Source: Euprymna scolopes (lineage: Eukaryota). From it: a stretch of 64,000 bases of DNA. Of this stretch, positions 1,557 through 63,238 are shown one piece after another. The stretch lies in the NCBI GenBank assembly GCA_053919585.1, contig CM132790.1, one strand, 5' to 3'. Under the pieces are notes generated by a model, which ran no database searches, had not been told where the DNA came from, and saw nothing but the letters and a program-made list of their open reading frames with translations. The position numbers and the translations under genes are program-made. Each line of letters starts with the position of its first letter. Positions within the stretch are counted from its first letter, which is position 1.

Positions 1557-1836
1557 TTGTTGATTTGATACATATTTTCGTGGAGATTTTCACTTCAACT
1601 GGTTTTGTCGAATCTTCAGGAGTAATAGTAATTTTTAGTACTGTGGCATCTGTACCTGGTGGAATGCTTACAGGCTGTTCAGGTGATGATTTAATTGGAG
1701 TTGATGGAAGAATACCTATGGGAGTAGTGCCTGCAGCGGGTAAAACTGCGGATAGCGTGGTTGGTGATCCGGGTGCAACTATAGCTGGTGTCGTTTCTGC
1801 CACAGGTACACCAACAGGAGACACTGTGGTCGTTTT
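1557..1836 (-). CDS. Type-A exon (280 nt)
   Basis: aagcag|AAA ACG...A|gtaagt; ends [12 protein letters not shown]. Confidence 0.88.
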
Positions 1837-2411
1837 CTGCTTAAATATAAATTATATCGCATTAAATTGAGCCAAATTTAAGTAATATATTCACTAAATA
1901 TTTAATAGATTGTTTAAAGGAAGTTCAAAATTAACACGGTTTTCTGGGTTAATAAGTTGATACACTGAGACAGAAATATTGGTCGATATAAGAGCAGGTA
2001 TTGTGGATATGTTAGATATTGGAAGGAAACCACAGGAAGAAAAACATTCGATGGGTTGCACACACGCAAACAGATTCAAGTAAGGAATACGGGATTTCCC
2101 ACCATTGCTTAACGGAATGCATAGTTTGACCCAGAAATATATGAGAAGGTATCGGTCAAATGTTGAAACAATAGCCAAAGGAAATATCAAACATTCCAAT
2201 ACGAAAAGAATGTTTTAGAAATAAAATCGCAACAACAAAAATCAGTCAATCGATTAGAGAAATAATGAAAGGCTGTGTAACCATTTCTTCACTGCCAAAC
2301 AACCGCCTAAACCCGCACCACTTCACGCATCTTTCAGAAACGTCAAAACACTAGTAATAATTTATAATCAAAAGCTGGTTTGTCGCTGTGTTGTGGTTTT
2401 TGTCGCTTTCA

Positions 2412-2476
<65 letters not shown>

Positions 2477-5400
2477 ACCAGCGACAAAATTAGATGTTAA
2501 CACTTATATTGACTGGACAAACGCGTTTCGAACAACCGGCCACAGCGAATACGTAGCAGAGATATTCATCTTATGGATTTTAACAATGGAACTAAACCTG
2601 TTTAGCGCAGGTAACGTTTCATACCCCCCCCCCAAAAAAAGAATATAATCAACAAACTTTTCGCATGTTAATATTTAAATACATAGAACGACGCATATCC
2701 GTACCTGTACACATCTCATAATATTTTCGAGAAAAAATAAACTCTAATAATGATTAAAGCACCAACATTCACGACTAACATAAATTAGAACAAAAACATA
2801 GAAAACATTACCAAGGCTGCTGCAAGGTAGGTGGGTTTCCTCTACAGAGTTTACAAAAAACAAAAAAACCCCAAAAAACTGCCAGTATTCGATAACTCTA
2901 GAAAGCCACGATTTGTCAATATATGGAGTATTGTTGTCGCATTTGAACTGGTGCATTAACCACTAGCATCTACCCCTTGGCAGGTTACTAAAAAACCCTA
3001 TAATTTAAAAGGCCCCACATTACATATCAAGTTCCAACCCTTGCCCCATCTTTGCATCTTTGTGCTTGTTTATAAGGTGCCCCGAAATAACTTGATGCAC
3101 CTCATCGACAATTTAAATACATCCGGCCAACTTTCCAGTCAGCAAAATCTCATCCCTTTATTGTAGTTCATATTACATTTAAACTTCTGCATGCTAATAT
3201 AGTTAGGGAAGGAAGAAGCTGTGAGAGAATTCCAAAAGATACCGGTTTGATAAAAGAAGGTATTAGTAGAAAGCCTTCTGGCGTATGGGGACCTCTAAAA
3301 TAAAGGGGTGGGATTTTGCTGATTGTTAGATCAGTTGGGTGAATTGATGTCAAAAGGGGGCACCAGAGCAGTAAATTCGCCGGAGCAATTCCATTAAAAT
3401 GCTTGTAATACAAGCGCAGGGATGCAACATTGCACCCATGGTAAATGGCCTGGGACTTGGTATTAGATTAGAGTCCTTTTTTTAAAACTCTATGTAGACA
3501 TGTGACAATTAAAATATGATTGGATACAGTGGAAGCCTTTTGAATGACAAGATAAGAAAAGAGTAATAAACCAACTTATGGTGCACATATATCAGGGCAT
3601 GTAACAACTGTTACCGACAGAAAACTATTAAATGCTGAACCCCAATTACAGAGTTTTGTCATCAGTTCGTACTACTTCCAGGCCTATTTAAGCCTCCTAA
3701 CTATGGGTTAAATGTACTTTTTCTTAGGCACGATATCAAACTGAGTTCGACACTCTTAGATAAGGTGTTTATCTCTATTACATGCCACCGTTCCAAAGTC
3801 CATTGGTCGAAATCGTTACTAGATTATGTTTAATTTCTGTCTAGATTATGTTTAATTTCTGGCCAACCTTATTTATCCCTTCCGACAGACAATTATATCA
3901 AAGGCCTCTATTTGTAGAGCTTTGGGAAGTATGGAATCAGTCATTAATTATCATTACTCCAAGTTCCAATTTGATTCTGAGCGATAGTACACGTAAGAGT
4001 CCCATTTAAGGGTTAAATAGAGTTTAGCAATTAGAGACTATTTATTTATAAATTATACAGCCACAAAAGTAATTAATCTACGCAGTATACAAAATAGAAC
4101 TCTTAAATATTAGAAAATATCAAGGACTTGAAGCATAAAACTTCTACCGAAATAACTGCATTTGGCATTAAATAAAACCAGGCATAGGATGCTATGAAAT
4201 AAACTAAAATCAAATCAAGCAATTCAGCTGAGTGGATATGAGAAGCTTAACGCGTTCTCTAAATGCATTTTATGAGTCATGCTTCTTCCAGAAGATAAAG
4301 TAGACAACCGATTTGTGGTACATGCAAAGTATAAGCAGATGATTTAACAATTTACCTGGGTGGGTTTGAGTAATTCGACACCATATTCTTTGACGTTCTG
4401 CGGATTGATCAGTTTAACCACACCGCCAGTTTTTATATCTTCCCCAACCGTAAGTGTGGCCACTCTGTCGTCTGGTGTAATTGTTATCCATCCAGGACCA
4501 GTGGGTCTGACATCTCCGGGATTTCCTGATGGATTTGGCTCGAGTGTAATAGCATCATCCGGTAAGAGCGTATCATCTTCCATGCTTTCCACAAGTGGAC
4601 ACGTAGCTAGAAGGAAACNNNNNNNNNNNNNNNNNNNNNNNNNNNNNNNNNNNNNNNNNNNNNNNNNNNNNNNNNNNNNNNNNNNNNNNNNNNNNNNNNN
4701 NNNNNNNNNNNNNNNNNNNNNNNNNNNNNNNNNNNNNNNNNNNNNNNNNNNNNNTCAAATTGCAATATTTATTCCCATTCTTAGACTTTAGTTTAATTAA
4801 AATATACCATATTTATTCGAAAACATACAAAGGTAACTGTGAGGTCTCACCCATGCACAAGATATTAATACTTCTAGACTGTATATATAGACCGGAAGGT
4901 ACCGACTTTTGGGGTGGCCTGTCAACTTTGTAGTACACGTAAATTGTAATTCCAACCTCGACAACCATTTCAATGGCTTTTTTTGTCAGAATGATGCAAA
5001 ATTTTACGCCCCCCCTCATGATTTGCCTCTCGGTTTTTGAGAGAGGCAAGTTCATCGCTTGTGATCTTAGGCGTCCTTACCGGGGAATGCGGGGACTAAT
5101 GAGATGTACTTTTTCAGGACCAAAATGCTAGCTCATTTATCCCACCTTCCAATCTAGTGTCCCATACTCTCGTGGTGGGAGAGTTTCAAATACCGCGGCC
5201 TGTGTATTTTCGGAGTGCACCATCTTAACGGTACATGCTACGACTCTTGCTCTCTGTATATTCTGTTTTGTTTTAATACAAATTACCTTTTCTAACCCAT
5301 ATCCGTGTCCGTGTTTTCCTTAGTGATCCTTCCGAGCCACAGCAACTTGGAGACTAGAACTCGAATTCACAAAATGACTTGGAGATGAATAACGCAAATT

Positions 5401-8400
5401 TAAAAAGATCATTAAAAAAAATATTCGGTTCGAGAAATAAAGGAAAAGGATAAAAGTCAACCAGTAATAATACACCGAAGCTATCAGGCAACTGACTAAC
5501 ATTCTAAAACAAATATTTTTAACCAGGGCTATGAGAATACCTAAATGTTTGAACATTTAGTACAGTTAGAAATTCTAAGTTAAAACTAAAAAGAATAAAA
5601 CGGTAAGCACTAATTTTTTGCAATTAAATAGTTTTTTATTCTCTCTCTCCCTCTCTCTCTCAAAAAAAAAAAAGAAAAATACCGTAAATGTACAGTAATA
5701 AACTGTAATTAGTTAAATTACACCGATTTTTTCTCAAGTAAATTTCGCTCTAGGGAAAAGTAAACAAGATGGACGACTTTAAAGAGATTATTCTAAGGAT
5801 GTTACAGCAACAAGAACTCCTGAAACAACAGATGCTTCAACAACAAAAAGCTGAAGAAAGACAACAGAAAACTGAAGGAAGATTGATTCAACAACAAGAA
5901 AAAAAAATGGGAGAACGTCCACAAAAAAGAAACAAAAAAAACATGAATTACTTCACAAAAGCTTGACCAAAAAAACAACCGCAGGCAGTAACACAGCGTT
6001 TGCGCAAGAAACAATATTGAATACCACAGAGACGTTTACCTACGTTCCTGATTAAGACCAAACTTTATGAGGTACGAAGACCTTTGCAACGCTGATTGCA
6101 AAAAGTGGTCTAATGCGAAAAAACTTCGTCTGCTTTTACGAAAGCTAGCAAATGCTGAACACAGTGGTTCGTAGACTACATTTTACTATCAGAACTTTTC
6201 AGTCCTAATATATCTCTTTTTCATAAAAGATGGTGATGTTTTAATTTAGCTACGCGCGCCGGCGAAGATTATTTGACGTTGTAATAAACACTGTAACAAC
6301 TTTAGATGAGCAGAATTATTGGCAAATAATTTTAAACGTCTCATTTTTTGCTCAAGGGTTAGTGTTGGCAAAAAATGCTGAGATTAGACGAAAAGTGTAC
6401 GCAAAACTCGAAAGCGAATCCAATCTCCATCTGCATAAACTTATAAAGGATTGCCAAGGGGTATGAGCGTGAGAAAAGTAAAGTACACATCTAAAATGAC
6501 GCCTTTAAAAAGAGAAATACGAATATGCCAAACCACAGTCTCAGTATAAAACAAAAGGATTACTTCCCTAAAAAGTTAAAAGAAAAATGGCCGCACACAT
6601 TTTCAAAACGATATTAACAAGCTTTTTGTGTGCAAAAAGGCTTGGGAGAGGGATCTTTTGTTGACTCACCCATGCACAAGATATGAACTTTTCTGAACTT
6701 TATAAATAGACCGAGAGGTACAGACTCTCAAGGTGACATGTTTATACTTCGTAGTACGCCACCTTGACATTATGTTCTCTGTATAATCTGTTTTGTTTAA
6801 ATACAAATAACTTTTTCTAGCCCATATCCTAAAGAATGCATTGAACGTTTGGTCTTAACCAGGAACGTAGGTAAATGTCTCTGTGGTGTTCCGTATTGTG
6901 TTTTGCGCAAACGCTGTGTTACTTAGTGACCCACCCGGGCCACAATACAAATATACGATACTGTAACTCTTAAAATGACAACAATAGTCGTTGGAAAATA
7001 TGCCAGATATACTCTCTTCTATTGTGTATGTATAATAAAAGGGAAAAACTACAAGTAAGAGCTAAAATAATCTAGATATTGATTTTGAAAGGCACATTAA
7101 AATAATTGCAAAAGCTAAATAATTGTAATTACAATCTGACAGTAAAACAATTAAACAAAATAACATGGCGAATATGTCGATCTGTAAGATATAACATTTA
7201 TTTTCGATTGAACTTAAGATTTTTGTGCTTCGTCCAAAATAAAAGCGTTTGTATTTATTCGAAAAAAAAAAAACACGAAAATAATACGAGGTTGTGTAAC
7301 TCTGCAAGCAATACCAATTCTCAGTAGAACAATATGTCAAAATATAACCTTATATATTATATGTATGTAGTGAAATGTCAAAGATAGAAATAAGAGCCAA
7401 TGAAATCCAAATACTGAATACCTTATAACCGCATTAGAGTAATTACCGACACCAAATTCGCATTATCATTGTGCATTAATATGCAACAATATAATACGAA
7501 ATATTTGTTATAACAAATAATAGAAATCAGATGAAAAAGAGTAATTATGTGGTGTGGTAGCCGTAGTTACAACTGGCAGTGTAATAGTCGCAGGAGTAAC
7601 GATCGTTGTAGCAGCAGGCGTAAACGTTGTTACAGCTGGCGTCGTCTCAGCTGGTGAAACAGTTGTTGCTATCGCTACACGAAGAAAACAGAAGAAACTT
7701 TATAATTTATGCATATTTGCTAGAAATCGAAACCATATAAATATAAAGATTTTCTGCTGATTTTTATCTATTCATTCGAATGCAAATCATTTTGATGGCG
7801 TTTCTATCAAGATTGACCATGTTTCAGAAAAATACCTATCGTTCAAGGAAAGCACGTGTGCAGAAAATTTATCACTCACCAAATCTAAGTCTTGAATGAC
7901 TGATTTGCGCCGAAAGTGGCTTGGATTAGTAAATCGAACTACTTTATGGAACATTATATTAGTAAATGAAACAGTGAAAATAACATTTATCGTGAGGGTA
8001 AAAAGTAATTACGTGGTGTGGTCGCTGTAGTTACTGCTGGTGTAGTAGTTGTAGTTACTGCTAGTGTGGCAGTAGTAATTACTGCTGGTGTGGTTGCTGT
8101 AGTTACTGCTGGTGTGGTAGTAGTAATTACTGATGGTGTGATTGCTGTAGTTACTGCTGGTGTGGTAGTTGTAGTTACTGCTGGTGTGGTAGTTGTAGTT
8201 ACTGCTGGTGTGGTAGCTGTAGTTACTGCTGGTGTGGTAGTTGTAGTTACTGCTGGTGTGGCAGTAGTAATTACTGATGGTGTGGTAGTTGTAGTTACTG
8301 CTGGTGTGGTAGTTGTAGTTACTGCTGGTGTGGTAGTTGTAGTTACTGCTGGTGTGGTAGCTGTAGTTACTGCTGGTGTGGTAGTTGTAGTTACTGCTGG

Positions 8401-8675
8401 TGTGGTAGCTGTAGTTACTGCTGGTGTGGTAGTTGTAGTTACTGCTGGTGTGGTAGTTGTAGTTACTGCTGGTGTGGTAGCTGTAGTTACTGCTGGTGTG
8501 GTAGTTGTAGTTACTGCTGGTGTGGTAGTTGTAGTTACTGCTGGCAGTGCAGTAGTCACTGGAGTAATGCTCGTTGTAACCGCAGGAGTAGTCATACTTG
8601 GAGAAACTGTTGTTGCTGCAGCTAAAAGAAGAGGAAGAAATGATTAATTATTTGTACATATTATACATATATATA

Positions 8676-8739
<64 letters not shown>

Positions 8740-11700
8740 CAATGAAAATAATTTGATTTCCTCTTCTGGTCCACATAAAAATATTTTGCAGAAAGCAGTG
8801 TATGAACATTAGTTATTCCTGAAAATTACTCATGATAGATGAACAACGATGTTCAGAAAATGTTTAAAAAGACTAGTAGGCCGCCTGGCTGTGCTCGGTC
8901 GTAAAATACGCACAAATATTATATTTTAATTAATGCAAAATTCTTATTTATCATAAACAGAAATACAGTAGTAAAATTCATTTGTAAAAAATGAAGTTAA
9001 AAAAAACGAAAAAGAAAAACTGAGACATGTACATGCGAGTGTTATGTTTTTTTTCTAAACAGTTCACCTCTTGTAAGTAAAAAAAAAAACACTCGATCTG
9101 AGATCGAAACTAAAACCTAAGCACAGTGAGTCCAGTACAATAACCATTAGGCAAGCTTAACATGATTTTTAAAACTGTTTTGAAACTTACTTATTCTTAA
9201 CATAAGTAATCTGTCATGTGACGATTCACGTATGCGCATTCGCGAAACAGTTGATAAACAGATAAAAATCCGATGACACTCACGTACCAATTTTTAAAAT
9301 TCGACCCTTTAGCAGCCCTTTTTTCCGGATGAAACCCGATTAGTTTTCCATATGTCTGATAAATCTATATACTAAATTTCAAGCCTGAAAAATTCGTTGA
9401 GTATATAGGTTGAGAATCGTCATCACATACACACATTCTCACTTTTATAGATATGTAGATTAAATACATTAAGTCACTTTGCCTAAAAATGTTTCGTAAG
9501 AAAACGTGTTTAAATCTTTAATATAACTGCTGGGTCATGATATGTTAAAGCACACGCTGAACAATATCACTTTTTGTAAAGGACATGAACTCTAAACTGT
9601 AATGCAAATTTCTGCGTTTTTTTTAATAACTAAAATACTCATTAACACTAACTTGTTGATTTGATACAGATTTTAGTGGAGATTTTCACTTCAACGGGTT
9701 TTGTTGGATCATCGGGTATAATTGTAACTCTCACGACTGTCGCATCTGTACCAGGTGGAATGATAACGGGCTCGTCTGGTGAAAATTTAACTTTAGTTGA
9801 TGTAGGTGTAGTTGCTGCGCCTGGAGCACCTCCAACAGGCGTTGTTGCTGCGCCTGGAGCACCTCCAGCTGGTGTTGTTGCTCCGCTTGGAGCACCTCCA
9901 ACTGGCGTTGTTGCTCCGCCTGGAGCACCTCCAACTGGCGTTGTTGCTGCGCCTGGAGCACCTCCAACTGGCGTTGTTGTTCGTGCTCCAAGTATACCTC
10001 CAGCGGACACTGTTGTCGTTGTCTGTCAAAAACAAAATAATACAGTCTTAAATGCAGACAAAATCAAATAATAGTTAACCATCTGACAGCATATCTAAAA
10101 GAAGGCAAACGATTTTCGAGTAAAATTAGGACATAAATAATACAAAGATACTAATGTGAAAACACTATTATGAAATAGGCTACAAGAAAAAAAAAACATA
10201 GGATAAACCTCAGATTAATTTGTTTATTGCGGACTATTATCCTTATCTTTTTTTAGTTGTTGTTGCTTCACGGCGTTTCGGCCAACCATTCCTCTGACCT
10301 GTGTCTGGTGGTAACCGCAACGGGATAGGAGCTCCGAATCTCCTAACTACATTCTCAGCAATTACTGCCTTCCATAGTTGTTGTCGCCTTACCATGGTTT
10401 TGGCCAAATAGTTGGCCGAAACGTCGTGAAACAACAACAGTACAATGAATCTTTAGTACAGTGAATGCTTAATAATAAAAATGTAATTGATAAATAATCA
10501 ATAGGTTAACTATTTCAACACGTAAACCGGCAACTACATACATGTGCACATTAAACTTTGACAATAAATAAAGCATATTTTTAATCCAACTGTTTAACAG
10601 AACATATATATTCTAAAAATTAAAAAAAAAAAAGCAAAATATTTGTTTAATTGCAATTTTTATTTAAAAATATCTACTTATATTGATCATTCCTTACATG
10701 ATACATTAGGAATGTATATTAAAGATTTTTCATTTATTACAAACTGTAACATAAATATCAAAATTAGGAATACCTATGGCTGTTTGTGGGCGTTAGTAGA
10801 TTACTATATATACATTATTTGAAACATTTTATATCATACAATTAAATGAGCATAAGTCGCTTTAATGGTAATATAGTTAGGATAGATTTCAAAGACATTT
10901 GCATTTATCATTTATATTAGGAATGTACAAATATAAAAAAATGACTCCGATTCGTTAAAAAGTCAGTAAGAAACAGAGAATTATCCAGAAGTATTACTGA
11001 AATGTTTATGATCTATTCATTAACTAGCAGGGAGACACAACTTCGCTCGTGATTGGATAAGGATCAATGAATGTTCTACATCGCAATATGCTTATTTTCA
11101 TCGAAACCGCCCATTTTTTAAAATTTAATCGATCGATCGCCTGCTCTAATCGGGGATCCGCAGCATGTACCGGGAGGAAGCTTCACATCACTCCATTGCC
11201 TCCCTGCAATGACTTAGTCCACAATACATTGTAGAACACTTATTGCTGATTTCATAAAATTGTTTTTATATTTGAATTAAAGTTTAAAATGCAGAAGTCA
11301 TATATCATGCTTCAGTTGTGCTCTAAACAGAAACAATCGTTTCGAACGCGCGCCTGTTTTATCAAATAACCTACTATTGATTTATACGCTGGGTCCCTCT
11401 GCTTATGCGGTTATAAAACTTCATAAATGCACTTGTGATGCTAGGCTGCATGAGAATGTTACTTTTAATCGTATTTTTTGTATTATCGATTTTCGATACC
11501 TATGGGAGGCATTCCGATACCAGACGTATCTCAGAACATGAAGTAGATTTGTGTGAAAACAACAAAAAAGTATGACAAGCCATTTCGGAGCCTATAAGGA
11601 ACGAACTCTCATACACAAACACAGCCACAAACACACACAAGCACACACAGAGATAAAATGCCTTTTATATATAAGTAGAGATTGCTTATGTATTTAATGG

Positions 11701-44098: not shown

Positions 44099-44129
<31 letters not shown>

Positions 44130-46832: not shown

Positions 46833-46870
<38 letters not shown>

Positions 46871-49800: not shown

Positions 49801-51057
49801 TCAGGTGGGATGTTGACAGGATTATCTGGTGAAGATTTAACTTTAGTGGGTGTGGATGGTAAAATTTCTACTGGGGTAGTTGTTGTGCCTATAGCACCTC
49901 CAGCTGGTGTTGTTGCTGCGCCTGGACCACCTGTCTCTGGACTAGCTCCACCTCCCGCTTCAGGTATACGTCCAGGCGACACAGTTGTCGTTGTCGTCTG
50001 TTTCAAAACAAAATGATATACTTTTAATTGCTGTCAAAATCAAATAATAGTTATGCATTCGATTTAACAACAAAAACTACTTATATTTATTATTGTCTTT
50101 GCAATACAGTAGGGATTTATATTAACAAATATTAATTTATAAAAGACTATAACATACGTATCGATCGATGCCTTTGTTCAATCTTAGGAGAAAATGGACA
50201 CCCCGTAAGGGTAGCTGCGCGTGTAATTGTGAGGAAAAATTTCAATCATACCTTCCCTGAATCGGCACTATTTGAGTCCAGTGATAAGGAGCGGACCAAG
50301 ACTTATTGGAAAAAAAAAATGAAAGATTAGCGGAGGGCACATACAGTACTCGGACTTTCAAAATGGTCACCCATTTAACTACTGAACAGGCTTAACGTTG
50401 CTTGACTTCGTTGATCTGATAGGAACTGTCGTGTCAACGCAATTATCCCGTGTACAACATGAGTATAGAACTTAAAAATATCGATAGCAACGTGTAGGTG
50501 TTTTAAAACATAATGTTGTATCATACAATTAAATAAGCATACGCCATTTACAAAGTTAAGATAAATATAAAAAACTCCGCATGTATTCATTTATGCATTT
50601 AGATTAGGCATGCACAAATATAACAATAATCATAAAGTTAAAAATAACAACATTGCGCATGTTGAAAGTTACTAAGAAACAAAGAATTGTCCAACATTAC
50701 TGCAATGTTTAACATATATTCATTAATTACTTATTTATTTAATGGTTCTATTCGCTGTAAAGAAAAATCTGGAGTCTTTCTTTAGAAACAATGCACTAAT
50801 AACAAGTCTCAAACTCCGACTCTTTCACCCCCTCTCTAAGCTATCTAAAATTCGATTTACCGTCTTCCTCCAGCCGTCATTCTTATAAGTAGTTGGTTTC
50901 CGCATAAGCAAATTAGCTTTACGTATAGACATATGATACAACGAATGTAATTTAGTTTTTCTTCCTCTGTAAAATAGGTGCTTGACACGTGAAGTATCGT
51001 ACATGCTTTGAAGCTAGTAAGTTTTCGTTTTCGTATTCTTTGTCATATTAAGCGATA

Positions 51058-51124
<67 letters not shown>

Positions 51125-51440: not shown

Positions 51441-51498
<58 letters not shown>

Positions 51499-52196
51499 CA
51501 ACAACAACAACAACAACAACAAAGCAAATACACAGAGCTAGCCAGAGAGTTAAAAGGGATTTGGATGATGAAGAAAATCAAAATAGTACCGATAATAGTA
51601 GGAGCACTAGGAATAATTCCGAAAAACTTCGAAAAGAGAATGTCAGAAATTGGAATCAGAGGAATAACTGCAAAAGTACAACGACTAACGATAATGAAAA
51701 CGACTGGAGTATTAAGGAAAACCTTTGAATGCGGAGAATAATATAAGACAATATAACGAATAAGCGTTACAGGGAATGAAGAACACCGAAACTGCATATC
51801 TACAAGTTCTACACCCGCCCCCAACATGCATCCCCCATTGTTTCATCACCGCCCCCCCCCAATAAAAAGTGATACCAAAGGGCTGAGATGGGTCAATAAG
51901 GACTGAAAGACCAAGGAGCGAGCGCCAACCAGACCTCAGCTGGACAAGCGCAAAGAGAACTGGGACCTTGGGGAGGCTGAGTGCCACTCAAATTCCAGTA
52001 TAAACCAATGGCTACTACCAGCGAGAAATCAATGGTAAGCGGCTGTTGCGATCATGCACATTCATTTGCAAATGCTATTGAAGGAGGTGGAGAGAGCTGG
52101 ACGTCTGAGGAGACTTGTTGTCACTCAGCTTCCTGAGAACACCACAAGTTTCCAATCAGATCGTTTGTTGACTTGTGTGAAAGCTCCATGTGAGCC

Positions 52197-52256
<60 letters not shown>

Positions 52257-52428
52257 CAATGGCAAGCAGCTGTTGCGATAATGCAAATTTATTTGCGAAT
52301 GTTTATGAAAGTGGTGGAGACTACTAAAAAACCTGGGGAGACTTGTTGTCACTCAGCTTCCAGGAAACACCACAGGCTGTTTTCAGGGAAAGATCTCTGA
52401 AAACCTGCGTGAAAGCTCCTTGTGAGCC

Positions 52429-52477
<49 letters not shown>

Positions 52478-55400
52478 GCCTTTTTAACGATTTTGTAAAG
52501 CAATAATAAAGAAATCAAACCTACCGTTTTTTATTTATTTATTCAATTTTCACACCAAACAAAGCACAGTGCCACTTTGAAGTAGGGGGCTACTATCAAG
52601 TACATTAGCTGCAGAGGCATTATAAAGGGAGATGAGCAGCAAGCTGTCAGTTCACATTACACTTGAACTTCTGCATGTTAGTACAGTTGGGAAAGCAGAA
52701 TCCCGGAAGGGAGTTCCAAAGTGTAGCAGTTCTGGGGAAGAAACTATTGAAGTAGAAAGCTTTCTTACACCTAGGGATTTCTACTGCATAGGGGTGGGAT
52801 TTAGCTGCTTGTTGGGTTTGTCGGAGGTATTTGTTTCGAGGTGGTACAAGTGCTTGTAGTTCGTCAGACCATTTACCATTAAAATACTTGTAGAAAAGGC
52901 AGACGGATGAAAAATTCACATTTCATTCTTTGGGGTAATGTAGGGGTTAATTATTATTAATAATAATTTCAATTTCGTGTAATTTATTCTAATTTTTTGT
53001 TATACACAGTTTCTTCTTGCAATGAGCGAATGAATTGAAAAATACATTTATTTGGCAAATTTGCCGTGTAAGTACTTATACTCAATGAATATGATATACG
53101 TTACAAAGGGTACCTTGTGCAATAAAAGCATTTCAAATTACTTGATTATGCTAAAAAGATACATAGACAACCGAGTTGTAGTAAATGCGGCCTATATAAT
53201 CGGATATATAAATTTACCTGAGTGGGTTTGAGAAATTCGACAACGTATTCTTTGACGTTCTTTGGATTGACGAGTGTAAGTACACCACCAGATTTGATAT
53301 CTTCTCCAATAGTAAGTGTTGCAACTCTGTCGTTTGGTGTAGTTGTTATCCATCCAGGACCAGTGGGTCTGACATCTCCGGGATTTCCTGTTGGATTGGG
53401 CTCGAGTGTAATAGCATCATCCGGCAATAATGTATCATCTTCCATGTTTTCCACAAGTGGACACGTTGCTACAGGGAAAAAATTAGAACATGAAGTTAAA
53501 ATTAATAATAAAAAAACAACTGGCCTTTCAATTTACAAGATACGCAATTAATTTCCAGATTTCCAAGGCTACCTCTTAACGCCGTCTTTATTCGAAATCG
53601 CACAAACTAGTCCGATGTTACGTAAGTGCAAATAAAAGAAGATATTATATATATTTCAATTTTCTTATCAGTTTCTTCAAGCTGGGAATTGGGAATCCTA
53701 CCGGATGCCAAACGTTCACCCGCTATCTTATATATTCCAACCTATGGATTATTTTAAGCTTCTGACCTTGCAATAGTTTAAATCTCTTTTACACTTTATA
53801 TTTGCCGGGTAGTTTTTGAAATCCTTTCTCATGAGTCCAGCTCCTTCTATAATTAATGGAATAATAGAGATCTTCCTAAAATTCCAGTTTCCTTTTATGT
53901 CATCCATAAGACTTTGGTATTTCGTTATATTTTCCCTATTAAGTGAAAATGTATATACGTAATGAAATGGAAACGCAGATGTAAGAGCTGATGAAATTTA
54001 GATATTTAAGCATTTAGAATACGATTAGAACACTATAGAAGTCAAATAATAAGTAGCATTGAGTAAACGTATAAAAAATACAAAATATACTTTGCAAATG
54101 ATACAGTTACAAAAGGTACAAAAAAGTTACAGTTACAAAAAAGGCACAAAAAGTTTACAAAAAGCAGAAAGGTACACAATGGTTACAAAAGGTATAAAAA
54201 GCAGTACAGTTACAAAAAGGTACAAAATAATTATATTTTTCAAATAATACAGTTCAGATGAAAAGAGTAATTACGTGGTTGGATTGTTGTAGTTACAGTT
54301 GGCAAAGGTGTGGTTACAGGAGTAACGGTCGTTGTAACTGCAGGTGTAATCGTTGTGATAGCCGTAGTAGTCGTACCCGGTGGAACAGTTGTTGACACAG
54401 CTGCAATAAGAATGAAGAAAATGTGCAATTTGTAAAGATTTTTTTAGGATAGGATAGCAACAAAGTAAATGTAAAGGTAAAAATCTTTGCATAACATTTT
54501 CACGTTTTATTACGAACTGTCTATGGTCAATATGATTTGTTGCATCGCAAAATGAGGCCAAAAAAATTATTTGCGTTTAAAAAAAAATAATAATTTTACT
54601 CAGCCTTGAATATTTACGTCGAAGGTAACAAAACAACGATCGATGACAAAAACAAGGCTTTGAAATAAATTAGATTTACTTAAATTACAAATGAAATAAA
54701 TAATATCACGAAAGAAACAGATTTTTTAGTGTAAAATAGATGAGGCCGTGTAAGCGTAATTTTTCATTGTAATGAAAAATAAAACCTAGCTCGACTGGCG
54801 TAGAGTTCGTTTCCTTTTATCTTTTTTTTCCCCTATATCTGGTATGAATCTCTTTTGTTCTTCTCCCTTTGATTTTATACACACTTTTTATCTGCGTCAC
54901 GTCTTTTATTTTCTCGGCGTGAATTATCGCATAAAAGGAGTTCCATTCCTCTTCAGATCGCTTTTTGCATTTCCCTACCTGAAAATAAATACGAGGGGCG
55001 TGCAATAAGTAATTCCCTTAACCCACTTCCAGTTGTCTGATTTAGCTGAAATTTTGCATGTGCAATGATTTATATCTCTACGGGTTATGGGGCAAATCAC
55101 AGCTCTGAACTAATTGTGGTTTCTGTTTTACAGGTATTTAAACTGAGTCAGGTGTGAAATGGAACCTGTTGAATGTCGAGCAGTGATCCGTTTTTTTTTA
55201 TTTGAAAGGACGCACACCACGTGAGACTTTTGATGAAATGAAAGAAACTTATGGTGATAATGTCCCATCATATGACCTTGTAAAACGCTGGCATCGTGAT
55301 CAGAAGCACGGGCGTGTGGTTATGAAATAATCCCATCCTCCCTACTCTCCTGACCTTGCACCTTCTGACTTTCACCTCTTCCCAGTCATGAAGTTGTTTT

Positions 55401-58400: not shown

Positions 58401-61400
58401 ACAACGAGAAAGCATTTGGAATATTACCAATATTGCACAGAAACTTTATCCCTTTCCACTTTACTGCTATTAAATGCATCAAATAGTTTCGAACATAAAA
58501 TTATCAAACTTATCTCGAAAACACTGTATTTCCGTGAGACTCGACGCTTTCACAATTACAAAGAATTCATTATTCTAAAACGTAATGCATTCAAATTAAT
58601 TCAAACCATTTGAATACTAACACATATTAAAAAAATAAAAGTACAAACGTACGATAAAGTATTTTGAAAATTTAAAGAAAACAAGATTTATCTATTCTAG
58701 AATCTGGTAAAAATTAAATCATTAAGAATAAAGACATATTAAAAAGAAATGACAAATACAACGATAAGATACGCTTTTATATGTAGTAAAAAAACGATAA
58801 AAACGTATTCATACTTACTAGATTCTACGGTACAGATTTTAGTCGATACTTTGATGACACACGGTTTTGTAGGGTCAACTGGCACAATTGTGATTTTTAT
58901 AATAGTTTTATTAGTGTCTGGTGGAATAGTTACTAATTCATCTGGAAGAGACGGAAATACATATTCTGTTGGAGGGGTAATTCTTGCAGGAGTTGTGAAT
59001 CCGGGTAAAAGTGTTACTGGTGAGCTAGCACTTGGCAAAATACCTGCTGGTGTGCTTACACCTGGTAAAAGTCCGGATGGTGTGCTAGCTTGAGGCAACA
59101 GTCCTAATGATGTGGTGGCTCCTGGCAATACTTCTGCAGGTGTGCTAGAGCCTGATACAAGTCCCCCTGCTGTTGTGCTAGCAGCTGGTAAATATCCTGA
59201 TGGTGTGGTAACACCAGGTACTAATCTTGCCGGTGTGCTGGCTCCTGGTAGGAGTCCTCCTGATGGTGTAGTTGCACCAGGTACTAATCCTGCCGGTGTA
59301 CTTGCTCCTGGTAGAAGACCTCCTGCCGGTGTGGTGGCTCCTGGTAAAAGTCCTCCTGATGGTGTAGTAGCACCAGGCACTAATACTTCCGGTGTACTTG
59401 CTCCTGGTAGAAGACCTCCTGCCGGTGTGGTGGCTCCTGGTAAAAGTCCACCTGATGGTGTAGTAGCACCAGGTACTAATCCTGCCGGTGTACTTGCTCC
59501 TGGTAGAAGACCTCCTGCCGGTGTGGTTGCTCCTGGTAAAAGTCCTTCTGATGGTGTAGTACCACCAGGTACCAATACTGCCGGTGTGGTAGCTCCTGGT
59601 AGAAGTCCTCCTGCTGGTGTGGTTGCTCCTGGTAAAAGTCCCCCTGATGGTGTAGTAGCACCAGGTACCAATCCTGCCGGTGTGGTGGCTGCTGGTAGAA
59701 GACCTCCTGTCGGTGTGGTGGCCCCTGGTAAAAGTCCTCCTGATGGTGTTGTAGCACCAGGTACTAATCCTGCCGGTGTGGTGGCTGCTGGCAGTAGACC
59801 TCCTGCCGGTGTGGTAGCTCCTGGTAAAAGTCCTCCTGATGGTGTTGTAGCACCAGGTACTAATCCTGCCGGTGTGGTAGCTCCTGGTAAAAGTCCACCT
59901 GATGGTGTAGTAGAACCAGGTACCAATACTGCCGGTGTGGTAGCTCCTGGTAAAAGTCCTCCTGATGGTGTTGTAACACCAGGTACTAATCCTGCCGGTG
60001 TGCTTACTCCTGGGAGAAGACCTCCTGCTGGTGTGGTGGCTCCTGGTAAAAGTCCTCCTGATGGTGTAGTAGCACCAGGTACTAATCCTGCCAGTGTGGT
60101 TGCTCCTGGTAGAAGTCCTCCTGCTGGTGTGGTGGCTTCTGGTAAAAGTCCTCCTGATGGTGTAGTAGCACCAGGTACCAACCCTGCCGGTGTGGTTGCT
60201 CCTGGTAGAAGTCCTCCTGCTGGTGTGGTTGCTCCTGGTAAAAGTCCACCTGATAGTGTAGTAGCACCAGGTACCATTCCTGCCGGTGTGGTAGCTCCTG
60301 GTAAAAGTCCACCTGATGGTGTAGTAGCACCAGGTACCAATCCTGTCGGTGTGGTGGCTCCTGGTAAAAGTCCTCCTAATGGTGTTGTAGCACCAGGTAC
60401 TAATCCTGCCGGTGTGCTTGCTCCTGGTAGAAGACCTCCAGTCGGTGTGGTGGCTCCTGGTAAAAGTCCTCCTGATGGTGTAGTAGCACCAGGTACCAAT
60501 CCTGCCGGTGTGGTTGCTCCTGGTAGAAGTCCTCCTGCTGGTGTGGTGGCTCCTGGTAAAATTCCTCCTGATGGTGTAGTAGCACCAGGTACCATTCCTG
60601 CCGGTGTGGTAGCTCCTGGGAAAAGTCCACCTGATGGTGTAGTAGCACCAGGTACCAATCCTGTCGGTGTGGTGGCTCCTGGTAAAAGTCCTCCTAATGG
60701 TGTTGTAGCACCAGGTACTAATCCTGCCGGTGTGCTTGCTCCTGGTAGAAGACCTCCAGTCGGTGTGGTGGCTCCTGGTAAAAGTCCTCCTGATGGTGTA
60801 GTAGCACCAGGTACCAATCCTGCCGGTGTGGTTGCTCCTGGTAGAAGTCCTCCTGCTGGTGTGGTGGCTCCTGGTAAAATTCCTCCTGATGGTGTAGTAG
60901 CACCAGGTACCAATCCTGCCGGTGTGGTTGCTCCTGGTAGAAGTCCTCCTGATGGTGTAGTAGCACCAGGTACCAATCCTGCCGGTGTGGTTGCTCCTGG
61001 TAGAAGTCCTCCTGCTGGTGTGGTTGCTCCTGGTAAAAGTCCACCTGATGTTGTAGTAGCACCAGGTACCAATCCTGCCGGTGTGGTTGCTCCTGGTAAC
61101 AGTCCTCCTGATGGTGTAGTAGCACCAGGCACCAGTCCTGCCGGTGTGGTTGCTCCTGGTAGAAGTCCACCTGATGGTGTAGTAGCACCAGGTACCAATC
61201 CTGCCGGTGTGGTTGCTCCTGGTAAAAGTCCACCTGATGGTGTAGTAGCACCAGGTACCAATCCTGCCGGTGTGGTTGCTCCTGGTAGAAGTCCTCCTGC
61301 TGGTGTGGTTGCTCCTGGTAAAAGTCCACCTGATGGTGTAGTAGCACCAGGTACTAATCCTGCCGGTGTGGTGGCTCCTGGTAAAAGTCCACCTGATGGT

Positions 61401-63238
61401 GTAGTAGCACCAGGTACCAATCCTGCCGGTGTGGTGGCTCCTGGTAAAACTCCTCCTGATGGTATAGTAGCACCAGATACCAATCCTGCCGGTGTGGTTG
61501 CTCCTGGTAAAAGTCCACCTGATGGTGTAGTAGCACCAGGTACCAATCCTGCCGGTGTGGTAGCTCCTGGTAAAAGTCCTCCTGCCGGTGTGGTTGCTCC
61601 TGGTAAAAGTCCACCTGATGGTGTAGTAGCACCAGGTACCAATCCTGCCGGTGTGGTAGCTCCTGGTAAAAGTCCTCCTGCTGGTGTAGTTGCTCCTGGT
61701 AAAAGTCCACCTGATGGTGTAGTAGCACCAGGTACCAATCCTGCCGGTGTGGTAGCTCCTGGTAAAAGTCCCCCTGCTGGTGTGGTTGCTCCTGGTAAAA
61801 GTCCTCCTGATGATGTAGTAGCACCAGATACCAATCCTGCCGGTGTGGTAGCTCCTGGTAGAAGTCCTCCTGCTGGTGTGGTTGCTCCTGGTAAAAGTCC
61901 ACCTGATGGTGTAGTAGCACCAGGTACCAATCCTGCCGGTGTGGTAACTCCTGGTAAAAGTCCTCCTGCTGGTGTAGTTGCTCCTGGTAAAAGTCCACCT
62001 GATGGTGTAGTAGCACCAGGTACCAATCCTGCCGGTGTGGTTGCACCTGGTAAAAGTCCACCTGATGGTGTTGTAGCACCAGGTACTAATCCTGCTGGTG
62101 TGGTTGCTCCTGGTAAAAGTCCTCCTGATGGTGTAGTAGCACCAGATACCAATCCTGCCGGTGTGGTAGCTCCTGGTAGAAGTCCTCCTGCTGGTGTGGT
62201 TGCTCCTGGTAAAAGTCCACCTGATGGTGTAGTAGCACCAGGTACCAATCCTGCCGGTGTGGTAACTCCTGGTAAAAGTCCTCCTGCTGGTGTAGTTGCT
62301 CCTGGTAAAAGTCCACCTGATGGTGTAGTAGCACCAGGTACCAATCCTGCCGGTGTGGTTGCACCTGGTAAAAGTCCACCTGATGGTGTTTTAGCACCAG
62401 GTACTAATCCTGCCGGTGTGGTAGCTCCTGGTAGAAGTCCTCCTGCTGGTGTGGTTGCTCCTGGTAAAAGTCCTCCTGATGGTGTAGTAGCACCAGGTAC
62501 CAATCCTGCCGGTGTGGTTGCTCCTGGTAGAAGTCCTCCTGCTGGTGTTGTTGCTCCTGGTAAAAGTCCACCTGATGGTGTAGTAGCACCAGGTACCAAT
62601 CCTGCCGGTGTGGTAGCTCCTGGTAAAAGTCCTCCTGATGGTGTTGTAGCACCAGGTACTAATCCTGCCGGTGTGCTTGCTCCTGGTGGAAGTCCTCCTG
62701 CTGGTGTGCTGGCACCTGGTAAAAATCCTCCTGATGGTGTAGTAGCACCAGGTACCAATCCTGCCGGTGTGGTTGCTCCTGGTAAAAGTCCACCTGATGG
62801 TGTAGTAGCACCAGGTACCAATCCTGCCGGTGTGCTTACTCCTGTTAAAAGTCGTCCTGATGGTGTAGTAGCACCAGGTACTAATCCTGCCGGTGTGCTT
62901 GCTCCTGGTAGAAGACCTCCTGGCGGTGTGGTAGCTCCTGGTAAAAGTCCTCCTGCTGGTGTGCTGGCACCTGGTAAAAGTCCTCCTGATGGTGTAGTCG
63001 CACCAGGTACTAATCCTGGCGGTGTGGTAGCTCCTGGTACGAGTCCTCCGGCTGGTGTGCTAGGTTGTGGCACGAGTCCTCCTAATGGTGTAGTTGCACC
63101 AGGTACTACCGCTTTAGGTGTTGTAACTCCTGGTACTAATCCCTCACTTGGCGTGCTGGCTCCTGGAACAAATCCTGCTGGTGTGCTGGCAACGGGTAAT
63201 GGTTTTATTGTAGTGGTTGCTTGCGGGCGAATTGTTGT
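1557..63238 (-). CDS. Internal part of a giant multi-exon mucin-like gene (split discoidin/F5-8C-like domains with internal G/P/A/T loops and Thr-rich linkers); 42 exons, about 5,350 aa in window, both ends outside
   Basis: Manual splicing: every exon has AG/GT ends, phases chain as C(1-0), A(0-1), B(1-1), and total length 16,051 nt = 3n+1 as required by a phase-0 start and phase-1 end. Confidence 0.9.
2413..2472. repeat. (TA)n microsatellite
   Basis: Directly visible. Confidence 0.97.
4356..4606 (-). CDS. Type-C exon (251 nt)
   Basis: ttctag|CT ACG TGT...CAG|gtaaat; adjacent to the assembly gap. Confidence 0.88.
4619..4755. other. Assembly gap (137 N)
   Basis: N run; the true size is unknown and could hide more exons or modules. 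Confidence 0.99.
4838..6949 (+). mobile_element. Degenerate, internally deleted Ty3/Gypsy-like LTR element
   Basis: Two diverged LTR-like copies (about 4838-5344 and 6659-6949) share CTCACCCATGCACAAGATAT and TTAGTGA..GCCACA; TGG follows the 5' LTR; purine tract GGGAGAGGGA precedes the 3' LTR; gag-like remnants ([28 protein letters not shown]). No pol and no clear TSD. Confidence 0.7.
7549..7674 (-). pseudogene. Type-B exon copy with mutated donor (GT>AT); probable pseudo-exon
   Basis: Acceptor intact, 126 nt open, but the 3' junction reads CCAC|ataatt where all other B exons have CCAC|gtaatt. Confidence 0.7.
8013..8621 (-). CDS. Expanded type-B exon (609 nt), 24-bp [16 protein letters not shown] repeats
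   Basis: ttttag|CT...CCAC|gtaatt; length 3n; ORF 7987..8595. Confidence 0.9.
8668..8735. repeat. (TA)n microsatellite
   Basis: Directly visible. Confidence 0.95.
8873..9459 (-). mobile_element. Non-autonomous Helitron
   Basis: On the minus strand A|TCTACATATCTATAAAAG...GC-rich subterminal motif...CTAG|T; no TSD. Confidence 0.72.
9653..10022 (-). CDS. Type-A exon (370 nt) with 33-bp [11 protein letters not shown] repeats
   Basis: tgacag|ACA...A|gttagt; length 3n+1. Confidence 0.88.
11024..11681 (-). mobile_element. Non-autonomous Helitron
   Basis: A|TC...CTAG|T ends; the paralogous intron near 50717-50750 shows the empty site TATTCATTAA|TTACTTAT with no duplication. Confidence 0.85.
12382..12632 (-). 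CDS. Type-C exon (251 nt)
   Basis: ttatag|CT TCA TGT...CAG|gtaaat. Confidence 0.9.
12736..18862 (-). mobile_element. Near full-length degenerate I-group LINE (ORF1 with CCHC knuckles; ORF2 APE-RT-RNase H), 11-bp TSD
   Basis: ORF1 [12 protein letters not shown] and [15 protein letters not shown]; [23 protein letters not shown]; RT QSGFR, LYVDDF; RNase H IYT(G)[26 protein letters not shown]. (CAAT)n tail at about 12736-12752. TSD CTGCTTTTATT at 12725-12735 and 18863-18873. Many frameshifts and stops. Confidence 0.93.
19138..19314 (-). CDS. Type-B exon, unit 1
   Basis: ttgtag|CT GTA...CCA C|gtaatt; 177 nt. Confidence 0.9.
19731..20190 (-). CDS. Type-A exon, unit 1
   Basis: tgacag|ACA ACG...ACA A|gtaagt; 460 nt. 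Confidence 0.9.
21002..21252 (-). CDS. Type-C exon, unit 1
   Basis: ttctag|CA ACA TGT CCG...ACT ACA|gtaaat; 251 nt. Confidence 0.9.
21638..21814 (-). CDS. Type-B exon, unit 2
   Basis: 177 nt, AG/GT. Confidence 0.88.
22231..22690 (-). CDS. Type-A exon, unit 2
   Basis: 460 nt, AG/GT. Confidence 0.88.
23508..23758 (-). CDS. Type-C exon, unit 2
   Basis: 251 nt, AG/GT. Confidence 0.88.
24143..24319 (-). CDS. Type-B exon, unit 3
   Basis: 177 nt, AG/GT. Confidence 0.88.
24736..25195 (-). CDS. Type-A exon, unit 3
   Basis: 460 nt, AG/GT. Confidence 0.88.
26010..26260 (-). CDS. Type-C exon, unit 3
   Basis: 251 nt, AG/GT. Confidence 0.88.
26646..26822 (-). CDS. Type-B exon, unit 4
   Basis: 177 nt, AG/GT. 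Confidence 0.88.
27239..27698 (-). CDS. Type-A exon, unit 4
   Basis: 460 nt, AG/GT. Confidence 0.88.
28516..28766 (-). CDS. Type-C exon, unit 4
   Basis: 251 nt, AG/GT. Confidence 0.88.
29152..29328 (-). CDS. Type-B exon, unit 5
   Basis: 177 nt, AG/GT. Confidence 0.88.
29745..30204 (-). CDS. Type-A exon, unit 5
   Basis: 460 nt, AG/GT. Confidence 0.88.
31022..31272 (-). CDS. Type-C exon, unit 5
   Basis: 251 nt, AG/GT. Confidence 0.88.
31658..31834 (-). CDS. Type-B exon, unit 6
   Basis: 177 nt, AG/GT. Confidence 0.88.
32251..32710 (-). CDS. Type-A exon, unit 6
   Basis: 460 nt, AG/GT. Confidence 0.88.
33526..33776 (-). CDS. Type-C exon, unit 6
   Basis: 251 nt, AG/GT. Confidence 0.88.
34162..34338 (-). 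CDS. Type-B exon, unit 7
   Basis: 177 nt, AG/GT. Confidence 0.88.
34755..35214 (-). CDS. Type-A exon, unit 7
   Basis: 460 nt, AG/GT. Confidence 0.88.
36031..36281 (-). CDS. Type-C exon, unit 7
   Basis: 251 nt, AG/GT. Confidence 0.88.
36667..36843 (-). CDS. Type-B exon, unit 8
   Basis: 177 nt, AG/GT. Confidence 0.88.
37260..37719 (-). CDS. Type-A exon, unit 8
   Basis: 460 nt, AG/GT. Confidence 0.88.
38537..38787 (-). CDS. Type-C exon, unit 8
   Basis: 251 nt, AG/GT. Confidence 0.88.
39162..39338 (-). CDS. Type-B exon, unit 9
   Basis: 177 nt, AG/GT. Confidence 0.88.
39755..40214 (-). CDS. Type-A exon, unit 9
   Basis: 460 nt, AG/GT. Confidence 0.88.
41030..41280 (-). CDS. Type-C exon, unit 9
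   Basis: 251 nt, AG/GT. Confidence 0.88.
41665..41841 (-). CDS. Type-B exon, unit 10
   Basis: 177 nt, AG/GT. Confidence 0.88.
42256..42607 (-). CDS. Type-A exon, array unit 10 (352 nt; 108 nt shorter than the others, in frame)
   Basis: gacag|ACA...A|gtaagt, length 3n+1. Confidence 0.88.
43345..43595 (-). CDS. Type-C exon, array unit 10
   Basis: 251 nt, [15 protein letters not shown]...FLKPTT. Confidence 0.9.
43658..45443 (+). mobile_element. Helitron-like element containing a nested mariner remnant
   Basis: 3' end GGCCCGACCAACGCCGGGTAGCCCTGCTAG|T (hairpin plus CTAG), after which host intron homology resumes; 5' TC boundary approximate. Confidence 0.65.
43950..44960 (-). mobile_element. 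Degenerate mariner transposase remnant
   Basis: [18 protein letters not shown]-terminus and [24 protein letters not shown] (YSPDL motif); frameshifted. Confidence 0.85.
45726..45902 (-). CDS. Type-B exon (177 nt)
   Basis: ttgtag|CT...CCAC|gtaatt; same length as the array B exons. Confidence 0.87.
46402..46676. repeat. Minisatellite, about 61-bp unit, about 4.5 copies
   Basis: TCTTCGCCGCCATCTTTGTTACTAGGAATTAC..AACACTCAAGATCGGAACTGCACTGA repeated. Confidence 0.9.
46838..46990 (+). mobile_element. Helitron-like 5' end fragment with (TATC)n
   Basis: TCTAT..TACATAAAAGG..TCTCTGTGTGT resembles the 5' end of the element at 11024-11681; no 3' end seen. Confidence 0.45.
47010..48780 (-). mobile_element. 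CR1/Jockey-like LINE fragment (APE plus N-terminal RT), degenerate
   Basis: [68 protein letters not shown]. Confidence 0.88.
48909..49037 (-). CDS. Type-B exon (129 nt)
   Basis: ttgtag|CT...CCAC|gtaatt; Thr-rich, length 3n. Confidence 0.85.
49703..49997 (-). CDS. Type-A exon (295 nt)
   Basis: aaacag|ACG...A|gtaagt; ends [12 protein letters not shown]. Confidence 0.9.
50340..50455 (-). pseudogene. 5S rRNA-derived sequence (5S pseudogene or SINE3 head)
   Basis: Minus strand GATCAACGAAGTCAAGCAACGT..GTTCAGTAGTTAAATGGGTGACC..GTACTGTA aligns with the animal 5S internal control region but carries many substitutions. Confidence 0.8.
51060..52476. repeat. Cluster of (TAA/ATT)n microsatellites at about 51060-51124, 51442-51520 (with AAC), 52197-52256 and 52429-52476
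   Basis: Directly visible. Confidence 0.93.
51521..51760 (+). mobile_element. 3' fragment of an RLE-type non-LTR element (R4/Dong-like) next to (TAA)n
   Basis: Translates [30 protein letters not shown], the typical C-terminal RLE motif. Confidence 0.72.
52530..52920 (-). mobile_element. 5'-truncated CR1/Jockey-like LINE 3' end
   Basis: [35 protein letters not shown], then a short UTR and an A-rich tail. Confidence 0.82.
53218..53468 (-). CDS. Type-C exon, N-terminal half-domain (251 nt)
   Basis: ctgtag|CA ACG TGT...CAG|gtaaat; reads [11 protein letters not shown]...EFLKPTQ. Confidence 0.9.
53660..53940 (-). mobile_element. Second RLE-type (R4/Dong-like) 3' fragment
   Basis: Minus strand [33 protein letters not shown]; boundaries approximate. 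Confidence 0.6.
54275..54400 (-). CDS. Type-B Thr-rich linker exon (126 nt)
   Basis: ttgcag|CT...CCAC|gtaatt; reads [16 protein letters not shown]. Confidence 0.85.
54992..55634 (+). mobile_element. Internally deleted mariner element with intact TIRs and TA TSD
   Basis: TA|CGAGGGGCGTGCAATAAGTAAT...ATTACTTATTGCACGCCCCTCG|TA; N-terminal [18 protein letters not shown] joined to C-terminal [16 protein letters not shown]. Confidence 0.95.
57073..57192 (-). CDS. Type-B Thr-rich linker exon (120 nt)
   Basis: ctttag|CA...CCAC|gtaatt; reads [22 protein letters not shown]; phase 1-1. Confidence 0.85.
57600..58380 (-). mobile_element. Tc1/mariner-superfamily transposase remnant
   Basis: Fragments [14 protein letters not shown] and [28 protein letters not shown] resemble ITm-family catalytic regions; heavily decayed, ends uncertain. 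Confidence 0.55.
58336..58426. repeat. Perfect inverted repeat, 44-bp arms and 3-nt loop
   Basis: 58336-58379 is the exact reverse complement of 58383-58426. Confidence 0.95.
58819..63238 (-). CDS. Giant type-A exon (4,420 nt): about 1,425 aa of PGATTP(A/S)G(G)L(L/V) repeats plus C-terminal half-domain (PDELVTIPP...[12 protein letters not shown])
   Basis: Acceptor ttttcag|ACA, donor A|gtaagt, length 3n+1; overlaps the 1444-aa ORF 58739..63073. Confidence 0.92.

Follow-up and report, generated by a model that had tools for sequence, protein, structure and literature searches.

The window, a stretch of 64,000 nucleotides from Euprymna scolopes, is AT-rich, eukaryotic DNA whose coding strand is the minus strand. 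The 39 exons recognised in it (13 of type C, 14 of type A and 12 of type B), when concatenated in genomic order, give a single open frame of 5,209 codons with zero stops, which is a lower bound for the gene since both of its ends lie beyond the window. Exon borders carry an AG acceptor and a GT donor in 39/39 cases, and the introns are of phase 0 between C and A and of phase 1 between A and B and between B and C. The C exon, 251 nt in length, encodes the N-terminal 83 amino acids of a domain, and the A exon has a Gly/Pro/Ala/Thr repeat at its 5′ side, followed by the tail of the domain with the motif STKIC. The exon C and exon A peptides quoted in the original prediction are all present in these minus-strand exons, whose coordinates are collected in Table 1.

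Table 1. Coordinates of the exons of the minus-strand gene, with the tandem array and the marker positions of the C and A exons.
Feature	Position	Strand	Description
Giant A-type exon A0	58819..63238	-	Gly/Leu/Pro/Thr/Ala repeat of ~1,425 aa, then 44-aa domain tail (YVFPSLPDE...)
C exon, module 1	53218..53468	-	N-terminal 83 aa of domain
A exon, module 1	49703..49997	-	51-aa insert + 43-aa tail
B linker exon after module 1	48909..49037	-	Thr/Pro/Ala/Val
C exon, module 2	43345..43595	-	
A exon, module 2	42256..42607	-	70-aa insert
B exon after module 2	41841-41665	-	opens the tandem array
Tandem array	19138..41841	-	nine C-A-B units, period ~2,505 bp
Standard array unit			C 251 nt, A 460 nt (106-aa insert + 43-aa tail), B 177 nt (47% Thr)
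Example array unit	A 27698-27239, B 26822-26646, C 26260-26010	-	
C exon, module 12	12382..12632	-	
A exon, module 12	9653..10022	-	76-aa insert
Long B linker exon	8013..8621	-	~200 aa, 52% Thr, internal repeats
C exon, module 13	4356..4606	-	intact; assembly gap in intron just upstream
A exon, module 13	1557..1836	-	48-aa insert + 41-aa tail; gene continues past window
Cys codons of the 13 C exons	53463, 43590, 41275, 38782, 36276, 33771, 31267, 28761, 26255, 23753, 21247, 12627, 4601	-	
STKIC of the 14 A exons	58846, 49730, 42283, 39782, 37287, 34782, 32278, 29772, 27266, 24763, 22258, 19758, 9680, 1584	-	

Thirteen complete copies of the domain are present, the number originally given. In transcript order the inserts measure 1,425 (giant exon), 51, 70, 106 (nine times), 76 and 48 aa, lengths that depend on the domain boundaries chosen in this analysis; those of the complete copies had been put at 46, 76, 106 (×9), 70 and 51 aa, read from the other end. 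Each standard module has exactly two cysteines, as had been noticed, and the 28 cysteines of the 5,209-codon model comprise 13 such pairs and two more in the tail of the giant exon. That tail (58832-58870, minus strand) has one extra Cys, unlike the modules inside the window; a partner for it, if one exists, would be found in the C exon beyond the window or on a different chain. The giant exon is bounded by the acceptor cag/ACAACA at 63238 and the donor A/gtaagt at 58819, has tandem periods of 63/96/159 nt, and has its partner C exon beyond the window, past position 64000. Between it and module 1 (58819 to 53468, minus strand) a B-type exon is absent; the phases would permit a direct A-to-C splice, which would leave two cysteines only ∼8 residues apart.

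Several further sequences were noted in and around the gene. A copy of a Thr-rich B-type exon at 7530-7675 (minus strand) has a good acceptor and AT replacing the GT of the donor (...ACCACACCAC/ataatt); it is probably a dead, skipped exon, and the frame is open without it. The long intron between modules 11 and 12 holds a decayed retroelement (14085-14531, minus strand; RVT_1 reverse-transcriptase fragment, E 6e-5), the only match in a Pfam scan of the other ORFs in the long introns. Within the window we found no signal peptide and no VWD, C8, TIL or CTCK domain. A plus-strand ORF of 1,376 codons (59112-63242) was considered as a gene and rejected, as the splice signals and RNA joints agree with the minus strand; it is an antisense reading of the giant-exon repeat and a by-product of composition.

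The exon layout is borne out by RNA. Of the words sampled from one unit, several RNA runs contain ∼35–42%, about the proportion that is exonic, and contigs from poly(A)/oligo-dT RNA (runs X5, X6 and X8) consist of exons only, with a match of ≥99%. The anticipated splicing of C to A is seen in these contigs as the joint 26010>25195 (CT..AC on the plus strand, that is, GT..AG on the minus strand). B is joined to C at 26646>26260, likewise with GT..AG on the minus strand, and A to B at 24736>26822, a joint read across the repeat period. Because exon A is contiguous in the RNA contigs, its repeat is retained in the mRNA. Contigs of X6, X8 and X13 leave the genome match at the acceptor of the giant exon (63238) and run on for 30 further letters which, together with the first codons of the exon, read ...KYIVELVNPLQ/TTIRPQ. 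The letters KYIVELVNP mark the end of an exon of type C (compare NVKEYIVELVNPSE in P0005). Since the RNA joins the giant exon to such an end, the repeat of ∼1,425 residues is flanked by two domain halves.

The nine standard units of 2.5 kb are 98.6–99.9% identical, introns included, and must therefore be either very young or homogenised; for the same reason their exact number is assembly-dependent. The uniform units are flanked by modules 1, 2, 12 and 13 and the giant exon, all of which have diverged. An assembly gap (N run, 4619-4754) lies inside the intron upstream of the last C exon, and 12 intron bases (gtttccttctag) separate it from the first base of the exon at 4606, which starts CT ACG TGT. 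As the gap is intronic and ends 12 bases before the C exon, it interrupts no reading frame.

When exon C was used as the query of a full HMMER search, 28 matches were found among 1.8 billion representative proteins. Most were calls of a single exon, some at least taken from genomic contigs, and these calls shared an end point that was followed by an intron starting with GT. Continuous homologous regions were found in two proteins of Octopus bimaculoides, XP_052834281 (P0012:68-193), which has no insert, and XP_052821907 (P0019:18-154), which has a short one; the JGI-contig proteins P0004, P0007, P0010, P0022, P0024 and P0029 contain two to five copies of the domain, of 139–156 aa each. Unsplit domains of the relatives are thus 126–156 aa long. 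The Octopus paralogues are 36–44% identical to the C exon of the window, and word-indexed protein searches (7 matches each) gave no named relative beyond P0012 of O. bimaculoides. Among the sequences retrieved, the domain was found in cephalopods and in JGI contigs.

In 20/20 complete aligned domains the N-terminal half is followed directly by the C-terminal half, in the order C then A tail, and Cys is the first and the last residue in every complete copy aligned. Exon C makes up the first ∼85 columns of this alignment and the A tail the last ∼45, with the insert site in the most length-variable region. We also built a profile solely from foreign (non-window) domains and searched it against 1,132 ORFs. 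It matched the C exons at profile positions 4–81 (E ∼1e-20) and all 14 A tails from 100/109 to 149/150 (E 5e-5 to 5e-3), the tail of the giant exon among them at 109–149. The order in the Octopus and JGI relatives and these split profile matches exclude a pairing of the A tail with the following C exon, so that the proposed pairing of each C exon with the A tail downstream, and not by way of linker B, holds.

Some of the relatives have surroundings of their own. In the JGI-contig proteins P0004, P0007, P0010 and P0022 the domain copies lie downstream of VWC/TIL domains and are joined by acidic, His-rich spacers (HPHDEHHPHDEPHD), not by sequences rich in Pro, Thr and Ser (PTS). In P0032 (L001:6907-20442, 4,511 aa) the divergent domain occurs twice, at 3968-4277, in addition to a canonical PF00754 F5/8C domain at residues 171-285, which means that discoidin-like domains that Pfam can and cannot detect coexist in one protein. 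The gene adjoining that of paralogue P0019 in O. bimaculoides (L004:17019-17213, CM046602.1) encodes a TSP1/TIL-repeat (SCO-spondin-like) protein.

For the fold of the domain we turned to structure prediction with AlphaFold2. P0012:66-195, modelled with the family alignment, gave an all-β structure of ten strand segments (pLDDT 90.3, pTM 0.85), and P0019:16-156 reached a pLDDT of 91.2; both are predictions for Octopus paralogues and not for the window's own module with its insert. Foldseek matched the P0012 model in the PDB to CBM32, IFT25, factor VIII C2, neuropilin b1 and APC10 (E 2e-4 and weaker, TM 0.55–0.69) and, in the AFDB clusters, mostly to proteins named F5/8C. With VIA-align the same model matched neuropilin b1/b2, factor VIII C1/C2, factor V C2, DDR1/2 and CASPR2 at Z 11.5–12.3 and an rmsd of 2.6–3.1 Å over 120–126 of 130 residues, and the ESM Atlas also pointed to F5/8C, by features and by structure. 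For the P0019 model a Foldseek-independent search placed neuropilin-1 b2 on top (Z 12.0), with discoidin I at Z 11.0. Among the Swiss-Prot models matched were factor V/VIII, retinoschisin, lactadherin, EDIL3 and neuropilin. The best PDB matches of the two models are all F5/8C, CBM32 or DOC folds, and by fold the domain belongs with F5/8C. The C exon and the A tail, earlier joined by eye into one β-sandwich, thus make up a single sandwich in the confident models of the relatives.

Sequence comparison gave no such answer. In hmmscan searches against Pfam with E up to 10, neither exon C nor exon A nor the A tail had any match, and the unsplit relatives P0012, P0019, P0004 and P0010 likewise gave no discoidin match. 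Searches of the PDB sequences by phmmer/hmmsearch returned chance matches only (e.g. ‘Pizza’ designer proteins), those with the family profile being free of any discoidin, and when hhalign was used to compare the family profile with the true PF00754 domain of P0032, the probability was 1.9%. Because there is no significant sequence link to PF00754, we file the domain as discoidin-like by fold and not as a member of the Pfam family; the discoidin (F5/8C) identity put forward earlier is upheld by the predicted fold and not by sequence, even in unsplit relatives. It was also correctly foreseen that standard domain scans would miss the domain. The cause is divergence and not only the splitting into halves, given that unsplit relatives are missed too.

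Residues 3..130 of the P0012 model align with 2173..2329 of factor VIII C2. This places the first and last Cys of the domain at the positions of the canonical disulfide of that protein, Cys2174-Cys2326, and by analogy the two would form the canonical discoidin disulfide. According to the DSSP string, a conserved D-[IL]-R-P...G-W motif and an invariant Asn lie in loop regions.

The models also locate the insert. In that of P0012 the strand VKSYTVFIS (70–78) is followed by a four-residue turn and the strand KILIKTS (83–89). VKSYTVFIS corresponds to the YVKEF-like strand of the window, and the exon border and insert of the window map to the turn that follows, so that the repeat does sit in the loop after the YVKEF-equivalent strand. 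The C exon accounts for the first six strands and the last 41–44 residues of A for the last four. In the P0019 model the natural insert is the sole block of low confidence (residues 81–90, mean pLDDT 62), a coil of 15 residues that leaves the remaining fold unchanged. The Octopus gene for P0019 has an intron at the same hairpin (...VVLFGKVK/gtgagt, 113 nt) and its insert is the 5′ end of the next exon, and many of the exon-only matches likewise end at this site; in the gene for P0012, which lacks an insert, the intron lies seven residues later (...KILIK/gtatac). This arrangement agrees with an expansion of the repeat at the 5′ edge of the exon downstream, beside a phase-0 intron that marks a surface hairpin. 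The equivalent hairpin of factor VIII C2 is presumably the one after YVKEFLISSS. In the known discoidin topology that hairpin is at the pole with both termini and the disulfide, opposite the ligand-binding spikes. By analogy the insert would exit at the termini pole, leaving the usual ligand-binding loops free.

Comparison of the diverged modules gives dN/dS values of 0.16–0.26 for C exons and 0.13–0.23 for A tails, based on small counts, and the inserts vary among modules in both length and sequence. We argue from the low ratios in both halves, set beside inserts that differ, that the split domain is still functional. In the same module pairs dS is 0.5–0.7 in A tails as against 0.02–0.43 in C exons, a contrast in the sequences that suggests gene conversion of C exons or a mosaic duplication history.

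Three other readings of the locus deserve consideration. The bare layout, taken alone, would allow C and the A tail to be independent small modules, or the A tail to pair with the next C across linker B, given that A tail and next C are only ∼60 aa of linker apart and have one Cys each; the repeat would then lie between domains as in ordinary mucins. This reading, the least probable of the three, is already refuted by the alignment of the relatives, in which all complete domains run contiguously from C to A tail between their first and last Cys, by the models, which predict the unit as one sandwich at pLDDT 90–91, and by the profile matches, which split exactly at the exon border. It is hardly more probable that assembly error accounts for part of the array, or that the array is a decaying duplicate without expression, such that the true gene has far fewer modules or the repeat is untranslated. 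The near-identity of the units, introns included, and the gap at 4619-4754 could be read in this way, and the RNA contigs collapse into a single unit of 915 nt, from which copies are uncountable. A decaying or spurious array, however, would not be expected to keep its frame and splice sites in every one of 39 exons, to have diverged modules bordering the uniform ones, or to be matched by intron-free poly(A)/oligo-dT RNA contigs at ≥99%.

The third reading accepts the origin of the halves and denies their present fold: a domain with inserts of 48–1,425 residues would no longer fold, and the product would be an unstructured glycoprotein or elastomer in which the old pieces serve as spacers and cysteine carriers. 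In its favour, the computed structures are those of Octopus paralogues with no insert or a short one, a hairpin loop of 1,425 residues is extreme, and the inserts are Gly/Pro-rich and resemble elastic proteins. We nevertheless regard it as unlikely, although less so than the other two. Both halves are under purifying selection (dN/dS 0.13–0.26) while the inserts differ freely, the core residues common with the unsplit relatives are retained, and the fold is predicted unchanged in a relative with a short natural insert at this site. Moreover, the ends of a loop in a hairpin are adjacent, which implies little cost to the fold. A folded domain with the repeat in its hairpin is therefore the reading we retain.

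The repeats themselves are of two kinds. The B linkers contain 47–52% Thr and 12–17% Pro with no Gly, and are true, classical PTS sequences. Standard inserts consist mainly of Thr and Ala (23% each), Gly (19%), Pro (16%) and Val (10%), and the giant one, in which 124 TTP/STP motifs were counted, of Gly (23%), Thr and Pro (18% each), and Ala and Leu (14% each); across the A inserts such a motif occurs once per 11–15 residues. Their GGxPG/GLLPG motifs recall elastic proteins, and from their composition the inserts could serve as elastic elements or simply as flexible spacers, without carrying glycans. Their TTP/STP motifs, like the B linkers, are probably O-glycosylated. Overall the inserts have ∼24% Thr+Ser (24% and 23%) and ∼40% Gly+Ala, which exceeds the >20% Thr+Ser rule (PMC9417175) and is well below classical PTS domains. 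The description of the insert as a ‘mucin loop’ therefore needs qualifying: it is a Thr/Pro repeat with more than 20% Thr+Ser, but at only ∼24% it is a Gly/Ala/Pro/Thr sequence, and the true PTS of this protein are its B linkers. In the broad sense of a mucin, a protein with long tandem Pro/Thr/Ser-rich regions, the gene qualifies chiefly through these linkers and only loosely through the inserts.

Taken together, we consider it probable, at roughly 85%, that the window covers the middle of an expressed minus-strand gene for a very large, secreted-type mucin-like protein made of split discoidin-like folds with repeat loops. The repeat unit would be a strongly divergent F5/8C-like, galactose-binding-like β-sandwich of ∼126 aa (without insert) encoded by two exons, with the phase-0 intron predicted to fall precisely in the hairpin that joins the YVKEF-like strand to the next one. 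There the 5′ end of exon A would have expanded into a Gly/Ala/Pro/Thr repeat of 48–106 residues, and of ∼1,425 in one module, that would leave and re-enter the fold as a loop. Thr-rich B exons link most modules, and the putative terminal disulfide would close each insert into a loop hanging from a stapled bead. The protein would be a structural component of mucus or jelly, and its functional properties would be those of a secreted, glycosylated gel or mucus component with closed disulfide loops.

A more specific and more tentative possibility, which we think more likely wrong than right and which is drawn by analogy, is that of a ‘looped’ mucin. The terminal disulfide would pass tension from B linker to B linker, bypassing fold and insert, and the insert would be a closed, probably O-glycosylated Gly/Pro-rich ring beside a free ligand face. 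That face may bind sugars, as do CBM32 and discoidin I, and so cross-link its own or neighbouring glycans into a gel, with the hairpin intron acting as an ‘expansion port’; if so, repeat length could change without harm to the fold. The literature we searched contained no description of such a polymer design.

What RNA, homology and fold prediction indicate is the presence of long repeats inside a small folded domain, one of them ∼10 times the length of the domain. The locus is thus a natural test of the size of disordered insert that a β-hairpin tolerates, and of loop introns as sites that permit repeat expansion. If the terminal disulfide forms, the topology would be that of a looped bottle-brush with distinct mechanics, which bears on mucus, egg-jelly and adhesive biology and on the design of biomaterials. 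Pfam lacks a model for the domain family; with a new profile, cephalopod secreted proteins would be annotated better. Cephalopod mucin genes and secreted proteins are poorly known (preprint, bioRxiv 10.64898/2026.01.08.698421). In full-text literature searches we found no description of a discoidin domain with a long repeat insert, of this domain family or of such a cephalopod mucin.

Compared with the F5/8C domains of neuropilin b1/b2, factor V/VIII C1/C2, DDR1/2, CASPR2, lactadherin, retinoschisin and Dictyostelium discoidin I, the family has the β-sandwich in common (Z ∼12, rmsd 2.7–2.9 Å, ∼125 of 130–141 residues) and, by eye, the motifs C-P-L-x-x-M-E and I-x-D-x-x-I-T, a central Trp, and RV/RI-T-I before the last strand. 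It differs in its shorter core, of 126 aa against ∼150–160 aa, and in what corresponds to the ‘spike 3’ loop of factor VIII, here a tight turn with a nearly invariant Asn-Val. The domain of the window also carries a repeat insert of 48–1,425 aa in a hairpin, a feature that the literature searched did not describe for any discoidin domain.

The textbook mucin has its glycosylated repeats in the stretches that separate folded domains. Gel-forming mucins and VWF-like proteins have VWD-C8-TIL at the N-terminus and VWC/CTCK at the C-terminus; none of these is in the window, and the gene exceeds both window ends. The CysD domain of MUC2, MUC5AC and MUC5B is likewise a small disulfide-bonded globular bead that recurs along a glycosylated thread, features that in the present protein would hold if its putative disulfide and glycosylation are real. 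The fold of CysD, however, is unrelated, compact and uninterrupted, while the bead described here carries a loop longer than itself. Lang et al. (2016, PMC4948705) report F5_F8 domains as typical of the mucin-like proteins of Lophotrochozoa and of hemolectin in insects, so the association of discoidin domains with mucin-like proteins was already known; what is new is the loop insert. These gel-forming mucin-like proteins and hemolectin are likewise large extracellular proteins with PTS and discoidin-type domains, and distant relatives of the window's domain are found alongside TIL and VWC and, in P0032, alongside a canonical PF00754 domain. In the lophotrochozoan proteins and hemolectin the PTS lies between domains, whereas the gene described here has a second, compositionally different repeat inside each domain. 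Finally, the gain of exonic PTS repeats by non-mucin proteins has been termed ‘mucinization’ (Pajic et al. 2022, PMC9417175), and there too tandem repeats grow within a coding exon and add Thr/Pro-rich sequence. The expansion at this locus differs in that it lies inside a folded domain, at a hairpin marked by an intron, in parallel in 14 modules, and is Gly/Ala-rich.
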